This document shows, in pieces, positions 30,050 to 45,914 of a stretch of 64,000 nt of DNA. Source of the stretch: Macrostomum lignano (Eukaryota); contig NIVC01001952.1 in the NCBI GenBank assembly GCA_002269645.1, positions 1 to 64,000 on the forward strand, read 5' to 3'. The notes under the pieces were generated by a model. That model saw only the letters and a program-made list of their open reading frames with translations, did not search any database and had not been told where the DNA came from. The position numbers and the translations under genes are program-made. Numbering within the stretch: position 1 is the stretch's first letter; the number at the start of each line of letters is the position of its first letter.

Positions 30050-33000
30050 ATGAGCAAAGCTGAGCTGGAGACTCGTATCCAGCAGTGGCTGGAGACCAAC
30101 CATGAGATCGTGCATAATCCGCCGCTGGGCGCCAACCAGTGCTCCATCGAGTTTGAAAAGGCGCGTCAGAGAGGCATCTTCGACGAGCTCAACAAAATCG
30201 GTTCCAAGGTAGATTCGTGCAAACTGTGGGCTTTAGGCTATGTAAAATGTATCTTCTAGTGTTAAGGTACTGTAAGATTTGAAAACCGTCAACTATTTAC
30301 GATTTCCAGGAGCTCAGCCGGCAGGTGAAGGACAAATGCGCTCTGAATGTTGACTATGTCCGTGACAACATCGTGTCGTTGGACTACATTGGCAAGATTG
30401 CCAACTTGGAAGGCCTGTTCTCGGTCAGTTCCTGGGTCCAAATGGCATGAAAAAGATGCTGTTAAAATGCATCAAGGGACTTTCATAATCTTTCGTAGAA
30501 TTTTAGACCATACACGGATTTTATTACATTGCCACCCAATTGTTCGCTTACAGTCGGCCACAGTAGAAGTGCTGGGCACGGCGCATCAGCTGTCGTCTGC
30601 TGACATCGAGGCACTGGGAGAGGTGCGCAAACCGCTGCTCGGCTCGGTGCAGCGCTGCTGGCAGTGGACTGAGCTGCTGTCAACCCTGACTCGGCTTCAC
30701 CTGAAGAACGCGGCCGACTACAACGACTTTCACGTTGAGTGTCACGACGCTGGCGAGCGGTTGACGCGAAATTTTAGTCACGCCCTGCGCCAGCTGGAGT
30801 GCATTTTCCATCTGACACCCTCCGAGAGGACAAAGCGTCTACTAACTACCCTGACGGTGAGACAGGCGGTATTAGTCTATTGCGGATATAAGGCGATACA
30901 AGCTGGAAAAAAGCATAATCTGACACTGACAGGCTAAAGTGCAAAGCAACTCTTTCAGAGATTTGAGCTCGGAGAGGCAGTCAAAAGCAGCTGGGTCTGG
31001 CGTTTAGACAGAATGTGGCTGCTTCTAGGCATCCCTTGGTCTAATAGAAGAAGCAGCCTCTAATATGATCAGATAGATTTAAGGCAGCCCAGTCTACACA
31101 GAAAGACCGTGATTACCGTTGACAGCAAAGGCCGACCTTCAATATGATTAAGGAGACAATCAGAAAAATTTTGCTGCCATCTATAATTTGCATCAACATT
31201 TATTAGATAAATAGATAGATAGATAGATAGATAGATAGATAGATAGATAGATAGATAGATAGATAGATAGATAGATAGATAGATAGATAGATAGATAGAT
31301 AGATAGATAGATAGATAGATAGATAGATAGATAGATAGATAGATAGATAGATAGATAGATAGATAGATAGATAGATAGATAGATAGATAGATAGATAGAT
31401 AGATAGATAGATAGATAGATAGATAGATAGATAGATAGATAGATAGATAGATAGATAGATAGATAGATAGATAGATAGATAGATAGATAGATAGATAGAT
31501 AGATAGACAGATAGATAGACAGATAGATCTAATGCGAATCAATCCTGTTCCAACGTAGGACTCACTAAAGCACAGCCTCACCGACTGGGAGGCAGTGGAG
31601 CGTCTGCTAGTGAAAAGCCACTCCATCGTGCCAGTGGCCGAGCGGCTTGGCAGGCAGCGCACTTCACCCATTAGAGCCGTGTGCGCGTGCAAGTACGAGA
31701 CACCCAAGGTGAGTTGGCGCGTGTCTGCCTGCAGAGCAGAAAGCGTAGATACAAATGTAGTTCGAACTGGATTTAGCACAGGTCAGTTGCATTCAGTCAT
31801 TTAGTTAAAAGCAGTACATTCGATCCTTGCCGGCGAAGCATATACGTAGCCTCGTCGGCATTCATCAAAAATTGGGACAGATCCCATTCAAGTATAAAAA
31901 AGTTACTTACACTCGGAAAAGGATAGCGAGCAATTTCTGCTAATATTTTTGTTAAGTTCGGACCTCTTTAGTATACTTTAGTATTCTAAAAAGTTCAATT
32001 TGAACGGAAGGACATCCAAGGCATGCATAAAAGTAAAAATCCTCACCTCTTTTTCAACGCGCACTACAACTACAAGTTCCGTCTTTCTGAGGGCGAGGAA
32101 GTTGTGGTGCTTGACAACTCAGACAAGCACCTGTGGCGGGTGGCGCTTAACGATGGCTGCGAGGTGCAGGTGCCCTCCATCATTGTCTGGATCCCACCAT
32201 GCGACCTGTTCAGCGTTGACAAAGGAGTCAAGTAGGTTATTTCCCATACTCCCCCCTGCAAGGATTAGAGTTAAAATTTCTATACAAATAAAAACTTTCA
32301 GCCTGAGGAAGAAGCTGTCCGACATGTGGACCGACTTGTTGGAGCGATTCCGAACCGCCGTCGTGGCTCATCTGAATTCAGTATTCAGCCAGTTTCTGGA
32401 GCGCCGAGCGGTACGTATACAATATCGGGGTGATGCTTTCTGGCAAGTGTCTCCCCCATTCATTGATGCGTTCGAGTCCTTCGTCTGGTGCACTATCGTC
32501 TTGACTTATTTGCATCATACACTTTGAGCCACGAAATGAGAATAGATTTGTTGAATCTGCAATCCATTTCGGCCAGGAATGGACATCCTCAAGGGTCAAA
32601 TGATCGTGAGCAGAGCAGCTCCTGACCCTCACGACATGTCGTGCGATTCAAAACCATGAGGGCCAACCTCCAAGGCGCGGAGAGTGCACATGCCTGACGA
32701 TTAGAAAGTCAGGGCTGATGTACACCCTGTGTGAGCGAGTGCATGATTGTCTGCCTACAGTATTGTTCTCAGGAGTCAGTGGAATGACCGAATTGCTCCA
32801 GCGCTGATTGTTGTCGATGTCACCTGGGTGCCCTCCACAGCCGTCCTACAATTATGATAATAATTATTATTGCTACTTTTATTGCCACATGGCTTGCTGA
32901 CTGTTCCATGTTATCTAAATATTTATATTTGGCCTTCACATGGGTACCAAATTCAACATATTTGAACAGAATTCTTCAATCGCAAATAAGCTTTTTCGCG

Positions 33001-33960
33001 AACACGTCCAATTATATAAATTAGGCACTTCTAGCGCCCTGGCTTTCTGTGCCCCCCTCTAATTGAGAAATTTGTAGAGCGTCAAAGAGAACTGCACCTA
33101 GTCACGATCAGGCGCAAGAATACCGAACAGCAGCTACAGCCTCTGTTCTGCTTTTTAGGCACGATGCGTGCCTGCTTAGCCTTTCGTTGAATCAAATTTG
33201 AGAATTTTTTATTTGTTTTTGTGCATGCAAGCAACAAAGTTTTCTTAGAAACAAAGAATTGCTCTGTGAAGATTTGTTTTAATCAATAGAAAATTTCTGT
33301 CTAACTTTAATTTCCGGTTGCCTCAGCCGGTTGAGCTCAATCTTAAATTATGTAAACCAAAATTCCAGCCCATTAAGGTGAGCAACCTCAGCAGAGCACA
33401 GGAGCTGTTCGATCTCATCGAGAGCACCATCTTGGCCGACGAGCCCACTGATGGGGTGCAGCTGCTGGCCAGACTGCTAGCCGAAGTCAAGGCCAGAACC
33501 ATTCACAAAGGTGAGCTGCAAGAAAATTGGCCAAGATTAGATCATCTTGAATACACTTGTACATCTATTGCACTTTAGGAAAAATATTTTTATTTTTATT
33601 TCACTAAAACCAACTTTCCAGATGACCTTGACGCTGCACTAGGACGCGATCCGAGGCTGAGTAAGATATAATACCGAACAGTTACTCGTAACGAGGGTGA
33701 ATCAATTTCAAATGTCAGCAGATTTCAATGCGTCTAATTAAACTTTTTCTTTTCTCAGGAAACGAACCGGTTCACTTTCCCACTACCGAGCTAGTGCGAC
33801 TGCACACTATTGTGTCCAAGCTGTGGCAGCACCTCAGGCACTGGACTGAGTTCCAGGAGGCGGGGGCCTTGCCGCACTACACAAGACTGCCTTGCGTGCA
33901 GCACGGCCTGAGACAGCGGCAAGACAGCGACAGGCAAGCCATGTTTGCCGAGCAAATCGG
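30050..33960 (+). CDS. Exons 1-9 of the large gene: plakin-type spectrin-repeat/SH3 head
   Basis: Phase-consistent GT-AG exons: 30050-30208, 30310-30423, 30554-30856, 31559-31708, 32077-32231, 32302-32410, 33378-33510, 33622-33660, 33759-33960. WQWTELLSTLTRLHLKNAADYNDFH and IRAVCACKYETPK|FRLSEGEEVVVLDNSDKHLWRV...VQVPSIIVWIPP match plakin motifs (WSWILQ..C...HLKENAAYF; AICDY...WKV....EAMVPSVCF.VPP). The true start may lie further upstream. Confidence 0.8.
31206..31527. repeat. (GATA)n microsatellite inside intron 3 of the plakin-like gene
   Basis: About 80 units, directly visible. Confidence 0.98.
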
Positions 33961-44638: not shown

Positions 44639-45048
44639 GTAAGTACAAGGTTAACAAGTTTGTAATAAAGCACAAAGTTTGGAGATAGGATGATAGACGA
44701 CAAAGGAATGAGACAGACAGAGAACAGAGGGCTAAGATAGAGGAGTCAGGCATGAGAGGTAGAGAGTAGAAAGGATGGGAGAGGGTAAATAAGAAAAATG
44801 CAAAAAGGGAGAAAAATACGATCTGCGGAAAGTAGAAAAAGTTGGAAGGAGAAGGGAACTCAACTGAGGAATGCAGATAAGCTGAGAAAGAACAGGTAAG
44901 ATACGAAGTGATGGAGATACATGTATAGTTTTGTTAATGGACTTCTGAAAGATTTAGGTTGAGACGGCTGTCCTCAAACAACGGAGTTTCACTCTGTCCT
45001 CGCTACGCATATTTTTCTTAATCCGCATGACAATGCATTATCTTTCAG

Positions 45049-45914
45049 GCCTGGCTGATGCTTCTGTTAGTACATCCGCCCAGGCTCCACTGAGTCCATC
45101 TGGCTTGCTCAGCCCCGGTGTGATGCTGCGAATGCGCAGATTACAAGAGCCGGAGTCCAACGAACAGACGGTGTTCAATTTAGCCCGCCGAGTGGACAGG
45201 GTGCAGCCGTCGCCACAGCCGTCGCCGAGGTCGCAGCAGCTGTCGCCAGCTATGCAGAGTGTGCAACTGCAGCAGCAGCCGGGAACTGACACTACAGACA
45301 ATGCTAAGCAACTCGCACCAACAACATTGCCAAAATCGCAGCAGCAACAGTACCTACCAGTTTCGAATCCACCTGAAACTGCAGTGGCCACCACCACCGT
45401 GACTGGGCTAGCCGCCGCGCCACCATTGGCCTCGGCGGCAGTACCGGTGCAATCGCGCCCAACGGCGGGTCCCGCAGTCTCAGGACTAAAAAGTCCCGGT
45501 CTGATGTTCCGGCTGCGCAACGAGCAAGCGGCGGAAGAGGAGAACCCGACGGCCGAGATGACGCGCGTGGCGGGCCGTCTAACAGGTGGTGGCGGTGCTG
45601 GCGGCGGACTCGGGCCCCCGGTGCCCGCTCATCGAACACCATCAGCGCCATCTTCAAGAGCTTCGTCGGACGACTCGATGGTGCTCGGTCAGGAGGCTCT
45701 TGGCGTGCAGGCGCCTCCAAAGCAAGCGCCGGTCCAGGCTCCGGAGCCCAAAAAGGAGTTCGAACTGGCCAAGCAGAGGGCTGCGGCACGGCGCCTTCTG
45801 CGGGAGCAGGAGGAGCGGGAAGAGGCCGAGGCTGAAGCGCAACGGCGGCGGCATCGAATGGAGCCAGGAGGGGAAAGCGACTCAGGAGCGACGTCTGGAC
45901 CTCGGAAGTCCTGA
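45049..45914 (+). CDS. Last exon of the plakin-headed gene: Pro/Gln/Ala-rich tail with a terminal E/R-rich helix
   Basis: Acceptor TCTTTCAG at 45048 fits the phase-1 donor at 44639. The ORF ends ...KEFELAKQRAAARRLLREQEEREEAEAEAQRRR...GPRKS-stop. Confidence 0.75.

Follow-up and report, generated by a model that had tools for sequence, protein, structure and literature searches.

What can a plakin do with a tail that resembles none of the rods, repeats or modules that normally follow its head? This question is raised by BOX15_Mlig019862g1, the single protein-coding gene at 30050-45914 (forward strand) of a 64,000-nucleotide stretch of Macrostomum lignano DNA (hereafter the window; positions 1 to 64,000 of contig NIVC01001952.1, assembly GCA_002269645.1). 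An earlier inspection of the letters alone, here called the sequence-only reading, had proposed that the product is a giant cytolinker whose tail is a ladder of binding sites for the dynein light chain LC8/DYNLL. Our analysis places a plakin-type head and a very long acidic tail in one gene, identifies a strand-like Q-T-[D/E] motif as the element that this tail has kept, and leaves LC8-type binding as a tentative explanation that would involve far fewer good sites than had been supposed.

The gene consists of 11 exons, of which nine short GT-AG exons (30050-33960) encode the head and are followed by a 9.1-kb exon and a last exon. The head exons were placed by reading frames, splice signals and alignment to an M. 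lignano homolog annotated as 'SH3_10 domain-containing protein'. Exon 1 (30050..30208) carries the ATG at 30050 and the N-terminus of the head (MSKAELETR..., 63% identical to the paralog P0001) and is followed by a GT donor at 30209. Exons 2 to 7 all have AG/GT edges: exon 2 (30310..30423, phase 0) aligns to P0001 and to a second paralog, P0003; exon 3 (30554..30856), with the motif LHLKNAADYNDFH, encodes spectrin-repeat helices inside the stretch that matches the desmoplakin and plectin structures discussed below; exon 4 (31559..31708) aligns to P0001; exon 5 (32077..32231) encodes the plakin-type SH3 domain (Pfam SH3_10, PF17902, E=1.6e-10 on the exon frame); exon 6 (32302..32410) restores the split codon AA/C (splice points are marked here by a slash); and exon 7 (33369..33510) aligns to P0003. 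Exon 8 is a 39-nt micro-exon (33622..33660) required for the conserved junction ...RL/RNEP... of P0003 and of the public model P0117 (UniRef A0A1I8J7Z8, 4,370 amino acids). Exon 9 (33759..33960) ends the head at a phase-2 donor, AATCGG/GTGAGT, which matches the phase-2 acceptor (cag/A) of the giant exon at 35523..44638 (9,116 nt); the resulting junction, ...FAEQIG/KRLADNQ..., is also found in P0117 and in P0004 (PAA62309.1, 'hypothetical protein BOX15_Mlig019862g1, partial'). Likewise, the phase-1 donor of the giant exon at 44638 (CCCA/GTAAGT) matches the acceptor tttcag/GC of the last exon (45049..45914), which completes the codon A/GC, gives the junction ...RDDVPS/LADASV... that is also present in P0117, and leads into a P/A/Q-rich C-terminus of 288 amino acids with its stop at 45912-45914. 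All nine head exons have GT donors, all introns have AG ends, and the 20 splice sites that were checked are intact.

Repair of three 1-bp deletions in the giant exon, which are considered further below, yields a cytoplasmic giant of 3,785 amino acids, in keeping with the approximately 3,800 residues claimed by the sequence-only reading, and its exon chain equals that of P0004 and P0117. P0004, which uses the same junctions and was called on this very contig (its positions 19957-53678 agree at 100% identity with those of the window), and P0117 are annotation models rather than transcripts; P0117 starts identically, has the same prefix and suffix in the giant exon and has its first 1,612 and last 1,144 residues in common with our model. 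That the plakin exons and the giant exon belong to one gene, as had been supposed, is thus borne out by matching splice phases and by junctions present in both public models. The giant exon is laid out as a 795-residue N flank, 9.75 tandem units of 195 residues and a 333-residue C flank. The acidic tail that had been estimated at some 3,000 residues after the head measures ~3,040 residues in GCA_002269645.1 after repair, and ~3,620 residues in the 4,370-residue model. Within the last exon, a short basic motif is duplicated internally (GVMLRMRRLQEPESNEQT and GLMFRLRNEQAAEEENPT), and the final stretch, KKEFELAKQRAAARRLLREQEEREEAEAEAQRRRHR, is helix-like and highly charged.

The head, of 458 amino acids, aligns end to end with P0003 at 54% identity and is clearly of plakin type. 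In P0117 the SH3_10 profile is matched over its full length (positions 1-65; E=8.4e-14, 51.8 bits against a cut-off of 22.8), and head residues 120-317 align to the SR4-SH3-SR5 region of desmoplakin (3r6n, E=7.8e-10) and plectin (3pe0, E=5.5e-7), with the spectrin-repeat helices on either side of the SH3 domain homologous to SR4 and SR5 of these solved plakin domains. A low-confidence AlphaFold2 model of the paralog head, made without an alignment (predicted local distance difference test score, pLDDT, 41), contains helices only, except for a small beta unit where the SH3 lies. No calponin-homology, spectrin-rod, plectin-repeat, EF-hand or GAS2 (GAR) match was obtained in P0117 with Pfam at E<=0.001, nor did weaker matches to these domains appear when pieces of the tail were scanned separately. 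Hence SH3_10 and its flanking SR4/SR5 helices are present, and the coiled-coil rod and plakin-repeat domains are absent; nor is the protein a spectraplakin, as it begins at the plakin-type head and has no calponin-homology domain, spectrin rod, EF-hands or GAR domain in Pfam. A plakin domain at the N-terminus without calponin-homology domains is also found in desmoplakin, envoplakin and periplakin, and the SH3_10 family is held in common with desmoplakin and plectin. Unlike all four of these proteins, the window protein has no coiled-coil rod, plakin repeats, GAR or EF-hand module and instead carries an orphan acidic repeat tail. The description of a spectrin/SH3 head lacking the usual rod, plakin repeats and GAR domain was therefore correct.

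To avoid counting near-identical units repeatedly, tail statistics were computed on 1,357 non-redundant amino acids, namely the N flank, one unit and the C flank. This sequence is acidic and rich in S, T and Q, and its most over-represented dipeptide is QT (27 observed, 10.7 expected), while the reverse dipeptide TQ is not enriched (8 observed, 10.7 expected). The tripeptide QT[D/E] occurs 20 times against 1.8 expected, a count reached in none of 2000 shuffles. With positions numbered from the Q as 0, aspartate or glutamate occupies +2 in 20 of the 27 QT sites (p=9e-11) and -4 in 12 of them (p=7.5e-4; D alone 7 against 1.8 expected), -8 and -6 are enriched in hydrophobic residues, and none of the sites has an acidic residue at -8, -6 or -3. 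The resulting consensus, hydrophobic(-8)-x-hydrophobic(-6)-x-[D/E](-4)-x-x-x-Q-T-[D/E], is strand-like. Both flanks are decayed copies of the unit, as indicated by weak co-linear alignments in which the QT[D/E] positions are retained and the rest has diverged. The tail is therefore composed of old, diverged modules together with a recently amplified array of 195-residue units, and the strand-like QT[D/E] motif is the sole element kept. Because Q-T-[D/E] and the acidic residue at -4 have outlasted the divergence of the decayed copies, selection on the Q-T motif is indicated. All told, 65 QT sites are present in the repaired giant exon and 77 in P0117; within a unit they are spaced 33, 33 and 23 residues apart, and some sites in the flanks lie 10-11 residues apart.

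The sequence-only reading had described the tail as an array with an 11-residue period. Every aspartate position and hexamer that it quoted was correct, and 11 of the 20 aspartates of the unit fall in two phases modulo 11. When pairs were counted at one to four multiples of each period from 5 to 30 (26 periods), period 11 ranked first, with 40 aspartate pairs against 22.1 expected (~1.8-fold, z=4.1), z=3.6 for Asp/Glu and z=3.7 for the Q of QT; single-lag tests for 11 gave z values of 2.5-3.3. The period ranked first for Asp and for Asp/Glu in the unit and in the N flank taken separately, but not in the C flank, so that the claim of the same spacing in the flanks holds for one of the two. The 11-residue rhythm is thus real but modest and does not amount to a regular array. 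An 11-residue step could in principle suit LC8, because an 8-residue motif plus a 3-residue linker gives this step in Drosophila ASCIZ, where the QT2,3 pair has a working 3-residue linker, while linkers of 6-9 residues give the most homogeneous complexes (PMC10046861). Two QT sites in the non-repeated N flank are 11 residues apart (36784..36840, forward strand), SSIAIQTE with an IQT anchor and KDGNSQTE with SQT. A coiled-coil or hendecad reading of the period was considered for the unit and rejected, as hydrophobic spacing there favours i+2 over i+3 and i+4, hydrophobic autocorrelation is below 1 at lags 3 and 4, heptad-type spacing is absent, and T, S, V and I are abundant.

How many of these sites resemble authentic LC8 ligands? 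A log-odds position-specific scoring matrix (PSSM) was built from 79 validated LC8 8-mers (Table S4 of Jespersen et al. 2019, PMC6607443). In leave-one-out scoring the binders had a median of 14.0 and a 10th percentile of 9.8, and 32 non-binders that contain the anchor had a median of 9.9, so that the matrix separates the two classes poorly. Twelve tail 8-mers score at least 9.8, compared with 1.6 in shuffles, and among the scores are 14.5 for SDIATQTA, 13.5 for CSKNSQTD, 13.2 for SSIAIQTE and 12.0 for EDFSSQTE. We called a site strict if its anchor read [TVI]Q[TV], if no proline preceded that anchor and if it scored 11.4 or more; by this definition 11 sites are present in the repaired giant exon (SDIATQTA nine times, SEIATQTA and SSIAIQTE) against 0.94 in shuffles, and P0117 would hold 14. 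Ten of the 11 are the canonical 8-mer S-[E/D]-I-A-T-Q-T-A, which occurs once per unit on the forward strand, first at 38038..38061 and then with starts at 38623, 39208, 39793, 40378, 40963, 41547, 42131, 42715 and 43300. The TQT sites of the window have I or A at -3, like some validated binders, e.g. LDIETQTD, and SDIATQTA resembles LDIETQTD of ATMIN as well as IDAATQTE of FAM83D. More generally, the enriched tail motif has three of the LC8 preferences, namely D/E at -4, Q-T itself and D/E at +2. The data thus allow a prediction of about a dozen good LC8-type sites and a few dozen weak ones.

This prediction is far more modest than the earlier estimate of ~17 slots per unit and more than 100 sites, since each unit has one canonical anchor. 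The larger estimate is unsupported because most of the slots lack the buried beta-branched residue at -1, a position that is T, I, V or S in all 79 published binders and Q, C, S, A, L or G in these slots; the other ~50 QT sites fail at this position. Nor does the number exceed that of every known binder, as had been suggested: human ASCIZ has 11 sites and KANK1 15 or more, against 11-14 strict ones in the window protein. The proposal that the tail is built of D-x-x-T-Q-T motifs survives in one respect, as SDIATQTA, one good 8-mer per unit, scores slightly above the binder median; TQT as such is not enriched. A check against ELM LIG_Dynein_DLC8_1 that had also been suggested, made with an ELM-style pattern, [^P].[KR].TQT, in which K or R stands at -3, gave no match in the 3,785-residue model.

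A broader view is provided by the relatives of the protein. A HMMER search with the paralog head as query returned 92 proteins. All of the organism-named hits that were looked up and that carry the head at the N-terminus are from flatworms: several M. lignano paralogs, the cestodes Sparganum, Hymenolepis, Hydatigera, Taenia, Echinococcus, Schistocephalus and Anoplocephala, and the trematodes Schistosoma, Calicophoron and Dicrocoelium. Of those that have a name, most are entered as 'hypothetical', 'unnamed protein product' or 'Desmoplakin SH3 domain-containing'; microtubule-actin cross-linking factor 1 is the label of two, and other members of their clusters bear automatic names such as plectin, titin-like and fibrocystin-L. 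Lower-scoring hits in which the head lies at residues 700-1000 include spectraplakins, two of which were looked up and proved to be MACF1-like, from a mollusc, and dystonin-like, from a mosquito. The true family of the window gene is represented by the flatworm 'Desmoplakin SH3 domain-containing' proteins, including Smp_073450 of S. mansoni, Calicophoron CAL8085208.1, Sparganum BHF70669.1, Echinococcus EUB63914.1 and M. lignano PAA53624.1, which, like the window protein, possess an N-terminal plakin-type head (24-31% identity to the paralog query) and behind it a tail that runs to thousands of residues and repeats Q-centred motifs. In at least the S. mansoni protein, the C-terminus shows a faint match to the plectin repeat, at 19.4 bits where the cut-off is 20.5, whereas the window protein ends in its P/A/Q-rich exon.

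The tails of these relatives are not alignable with that of the window protein. Nevertheless, QT and [TVI]Q[TV] are present at 2.5-7 times expectation in most of the long ones. Smp_073450 has 34 TQT (4.6 expected), 59 [TVI]Q[TV] (18 expected) and 30 strict sites in 18 distinct 8-mers (1.3 expected); [TVI]Q[TV] occurs 44 times in Calicophoron (15 expected), 37 times in Dicrocoelium (9.5 expected) and 19 times in PAA53624.1 (6.8 expected), whose tail includes a series of [KRE]DF[ST]TQT motifs. When only distinct contexts of Q[TVI] are counted, Sparganum, Calicophoron, S. mansoni, Echinococcus and PAA53624.1 show a 3-6-fold excess of D at -4, most long tails show a ~2-fold excess of T/V/I at -1, and +2 is enriched in D/E or G. 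The two canonical spectraplakins that served as controls, the mollusc MACF1-like and mosquito dystonin-like proteins, show no such enrichment. Repeats within each protein inflate the significance values of these enrichments, and the recurrence of the motif across lineages whose tails cannot be aligned would appear to be the stronger argument. The motif of the parasite relatives, D-x-x-[TVI]-Q-[TVI]-[D/E/G], with GKKLQV also found, is nearer to canonical LC8 ligands than that of the window protein, which by these comparisons reads as a family member with a relaxed -1 position. We found no literature on Smp_073450 or on a Macrostomum plakin, and the family-wide QT-motif design of flatworms appears to be undescribed.

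Among the explanations of the tail that we have weighed, the most likely, which we put forward tentatively, is that it is a plakin-anchored, mostly unfolded acidic chain that is paired and stiffened by LC8-fold light chains. The head would anchor the protein at a cortical, junctional or cytoskeletal site, as plakin domains do, and the tail, when unbound, would be mostly unfolded. LC8-fold light chains, which are dimeric and capture strands, would bind the strong site of each unit and, cooperatively, some of the weaker QT[D/E] sites, so that two parallel chains would be zipped together as a stiffened, beaded duplex in place of the coiled-coil rod of ordinary plakins. The copy number of the unit, which differs between assemblies, would then set the length of the tail.

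Precedent for such an arrangement exists in the L2 linker of the cortical adaptor KANK1, in which many closely spaced, individually weak and non-canonical sites bind LC8 cooperatively and two disordered chains of ~250 residues become a beaded rod of ~53 nm with ~15 dimers (PMC12803091). The binding principle is that which the sequence-only reading had proposed for the window tail. KANK1 is a vertebrate protein without a plakin domain or 195-residue tandem units, and its binding has been shown by experiment, whereas that of the window protein is a prediction; its tail is 5-10 times longer than the KANK1 linker, with the strong sites 195 residues apart. ASCIZ/ATMIN and the DID of Nup159 are also comparable, as they contain TQT/QT arrays with D/S at -4 and D/E at +2 that lie in a disordered region. 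These proteins differ in having 5-11 canonical sites within 80-400 residues, while the window tail has one per 195 residues together with degenerate QT[D/E] sites that lack a beta-branched residue at -1.

Several observations weigh against LC8-mediated pairing. In the non-redundant tail, neither TQT (2 observed, 1.1 expected) nor the anchor [TVI]Q[TV] (6 observed, 4.05 expected) is enriched, and the -1 position of the QT sites is unconstrained, being occupied by Q, C, S, A, L, G or E, with T/V/I in 4 of 27, which is no enrichment. Positions -1 and +1 hold the only fully buried side chains of the LC8 motif, many TQT peptides do not bind LC8, and high charge density is reported to disfavour binding (PMC6607443). 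The strict sites are 195 residues apart, far beyond the spacing of known ladders, and the negative result with the ELM-style pattern belongs here as well. The expected disorder is likewise ambiguous. D and E make up 23.6% of the unit, whose net charge per residue is -0.19, and the charge-hydropathy test places the unit, alone among the parts of the tail, on the disordered side, the flanks being borderline; 27% of the tail is hydrophobic, with an i,i+2 pattern in the unit. AlphaFold2, run on two units without an alignment, returned hairpins and two helices per unit at a pLDDT of 36, a score that fits disorder or lack of information alike. Finally, as set out below, the expansion of light chains that would supply the partners is documented for parasitic flatworms and not for Macrostomum.

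The larger proposal that follows from LC8-mediated pairing is decidedly doubtful in its full extent. It holds that these proteins may form a flatworm-specific plakin class in which a very long array of LC8-type motifs stands in for the coiled-coil rod, that the giants may be the missing scaffolds for the expanded dynein-light-chain (DLC) proteins of the epidermis or tegument, possibly including TALs, and that a cortical cytolinker might owe its length and stiffness to light-chain loading and copy number. An expansion of the DLC domain, PF01221, has been described in trematodes and cestodes (PMC3510090); this expansion, like that of the TALs, is the one recorded in parasites alone. In the three cestodes studied, PF01221 is also the one domain whose enrichment in the tegument fraction is common to all (bioRxiv 10.64898/2026.04.22.720116), and the tegumental DLC-domain proteins of cestodes and flukes are described as abundant and immunologically important, their function being called largely unknown (bioRxiv 10.64898/2026.04.22.720116; PMC3510090). 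The tegument list of E. multilocularis contains at least 17 LC8-type chains and one Tctex-type chain (bioRxiv 10.64898/2026.04.22.720116), and the proteins enriched there include a large 'Desmoplakin-A'-like protein, EmuJ_000701500 (131 peptides), and its neighbour EmuJ_000701600 (104 peptides, no hits; Table S6 of the same study). These two could be one split gene of the window protein's family, which we offer as a lead rather than as evidence.

A different partner for the same motif is somewhat unlikely and nonetheless the best of the competing explanations. The tail would then be a motif array for another strand-capturing protein, e.g. one of Tctex/DYNLT type or a flatworm protein, or would consist of small beta-rich modules that pair within the chain, and LC8 would not be involved. 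In favour of this explanation, the conserved positions -8, -6, -4, 0 and +2 lie on one face of a strand while the LC8-critical -1 is free to vary, and the cestode tegument fraction is enriched in a Tctex-type light chain as well. Further points in its favour are the i,i+2 hydrophobic pattern of the unit, with its 27% hydrophobic residues, the hairpins of the low-confidence AlphaFold2 model and the summed weak beta-sandwich matches of Pfam on the TQT segment. Against these points stand the lack of a confident fold and of any domain family that matches per unit, the failure of whole modules to be conserved between species, which would be unusual for folded domains, and the motif of the relatives, which has T/V/I at -1 and D at -4 as standard LC8 motifs do.

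The beta-sandwich matches are those of Fervidolysin_SD2, which Pfam reports on P0117 with E=4e-11. We rejected this assignment, as the score is the sum of 13 identical weak matches of which none is significant singly. The match covers P0117 residues 1486-1523, corresponding to the unit segment MYDPESSDIATQTAIEVNSDSVRIGSTSVDAETFTTLR, with the first copy in the window at ~38017-38130. The score may reflect strand propensity around the TQT site.

It is improbable that the tail is simply a disordered, acidic spacer that evolves fast and acts, without a specific ligand, as a polyanionic entropic bristle or spring, in which QT[D/E] and the 11-residue rhythm are leftovers of a multiplied ancestral short repeat. 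Word-indexed searches of 5.8 billion proteins found no homolog of the N flank and unit or of the C flank and last exon, and this absence of relatives of the tail and C-terminus is what a spacer would lead one to expect. The units are ~99-100% identical in DNA, which is a sign of recent amplification or homogenisation, the flanks look like decayed copies of the unit, and the periodicity is weak. Yet Q-T-[D/E] and the acidic residue at -4 are almost all that these decayed copies have kept, a sign that the motif is under selection, and similar arrays are found in the unalignable tails of distant flatworm relatives and are absent from canonical spectraplakins.

Very improbable is the idea that Q-T-[D/E] marks sites of modification, the T being a target of an acidophilic casein kinase 2 (CK2)-like kinase or the Q a target of transglutaminase cross-linking, as in plakins of the cornified envelope. 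Envoplakin and periplakin are transglutaminase substrates, which counts in favour of this idea, but Q-T-[D/E] is not known as a target motif of transglutaminase. Phosphorylation would fit the D/E that follows T in 20 of 27 sites, often with further acidic residues, and casein kinase II alpha is present in the list of cestode tegument-enriched proteins; CK2 would nevertheless leave unexplained the invariant Q before T and the hydrophobic residues at -6 and -8 (tegument list from bioRxiv 10.64898/2026.04.22.720116).

The three deletions lie in the tandem array, in which 9.75 units of 585 bp (195 amino acids) occupy 37909..43638 on the forward strand, with starts at 37909, 38494, 39079, 39664, 40249, 40834, 41419, 42003, 42587 and 43171. 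P0117 has 12.75 units in an uninterrupted frame. The nine full copies in the window differ at approximately six DNA positions. Unit 7 lacks one base at 41480..41492 (near 41487), where GATGA[G/A]ATATCC has become GATGAATATCC, and a stop is created at 41512-41514; this deletion is absent from P0117. Unit 8 lacks a base at the same G/A site (42064..42076, near 42071), with a stop at 42096-42098. A third base is missing from unit 9 (42622..42633, near 42628), where GGAAC[G/A]GGCC has become GGAACGGCC, and this third shift restores the original frame. Without repair, the frame of the giant exon meets three stops, ending at 41514, 42098 and 42643; once the three deletions are repaired, it is open for 3,073 codons. 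The open giant exon of the sequence-only reading is thus recovered after repair, with ~3,040 codons of tail, although as assembled its frame is broken three times. Because each missing base lies exactly on one of the two G/A positions that distinguish the units and the frame of P0117 is uninterrupted, the deletions are probably assembly or consensus errors in the near-identical array. The unit copy number in GCA_002269645.1 is uncertain or polymorphic. Three deletions together with three extra units in P0117 are a textbook sign of consensus errors and collapse in a tandem array. That the frameshifts are real, and the window copy a broken, decaying duplicate in a genome with many duplicated genes, is extremely unlikely: the three interrupting stops are all that suggest it, and against them the deletions sit precisely at the G/A sites that differ between units, where consensus calling fails in near-identical repeats, the three shifts total -3 and restore the frame, the remainder of the gene is intact, including the 20 checked splice sites, and a public model from another assembly gives the same protein without shifts.

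If the tail binds LC8-fold chains, then this would be a plakin that is dimerised and stiffened by a hub protein instead of a coiled coil, it would rank among the largest LC8 clients known, and it would offer a concrete class of ligands for the tegumental DLC-domain proteins of tapeworms and flukes. In situ hybridisation and RNA interference are routine in Macrostomum lignano, and therefore the hypothesis can be tested in a free-living model before it is taken to parasites. Should binding fail, the locus would still display a family-wide, selected Q-T motif with some other partner, and it would still illustrate clearly how a long-read assembly can err in the copy number and reading frame of a tandem repeat.

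Elsewhere in the window, an intact single-exon open reading frame of 615 amino acids is present at 2596-4443 on the forward strand; it has a signal-peptide-like start (MFNWRLLCLFGFLLGHIGVHAAS...) and no Pfam match, and may encode a secreted orphan protein. On the reverse strand, at 22668-24140, a single-exon open reading frame of 490 amino acids matches the rhodopsin family of G-protein-coupled receptors (Pfam 7tm_1, E=1.8e-22) and lies ~6 kb upstream of the plakin-like gene, in the opposite orientation. The window also contains a number of repeats, including unusually long simple repeats of (CT)n (1.3 kb, 6016-7301), (CAGT)97 (7701-8090), (TGTC)100 (53964-54359) and an 18-bp sequence present 15 times (55808-56083), a 26-bp minisatellite of 43 copies (8651-9778), a 16-bp minisatellite of 69 copies (51115-52194) and, within intron 3 of the plakin-like gene, (TAGA)81 (31204-31528).

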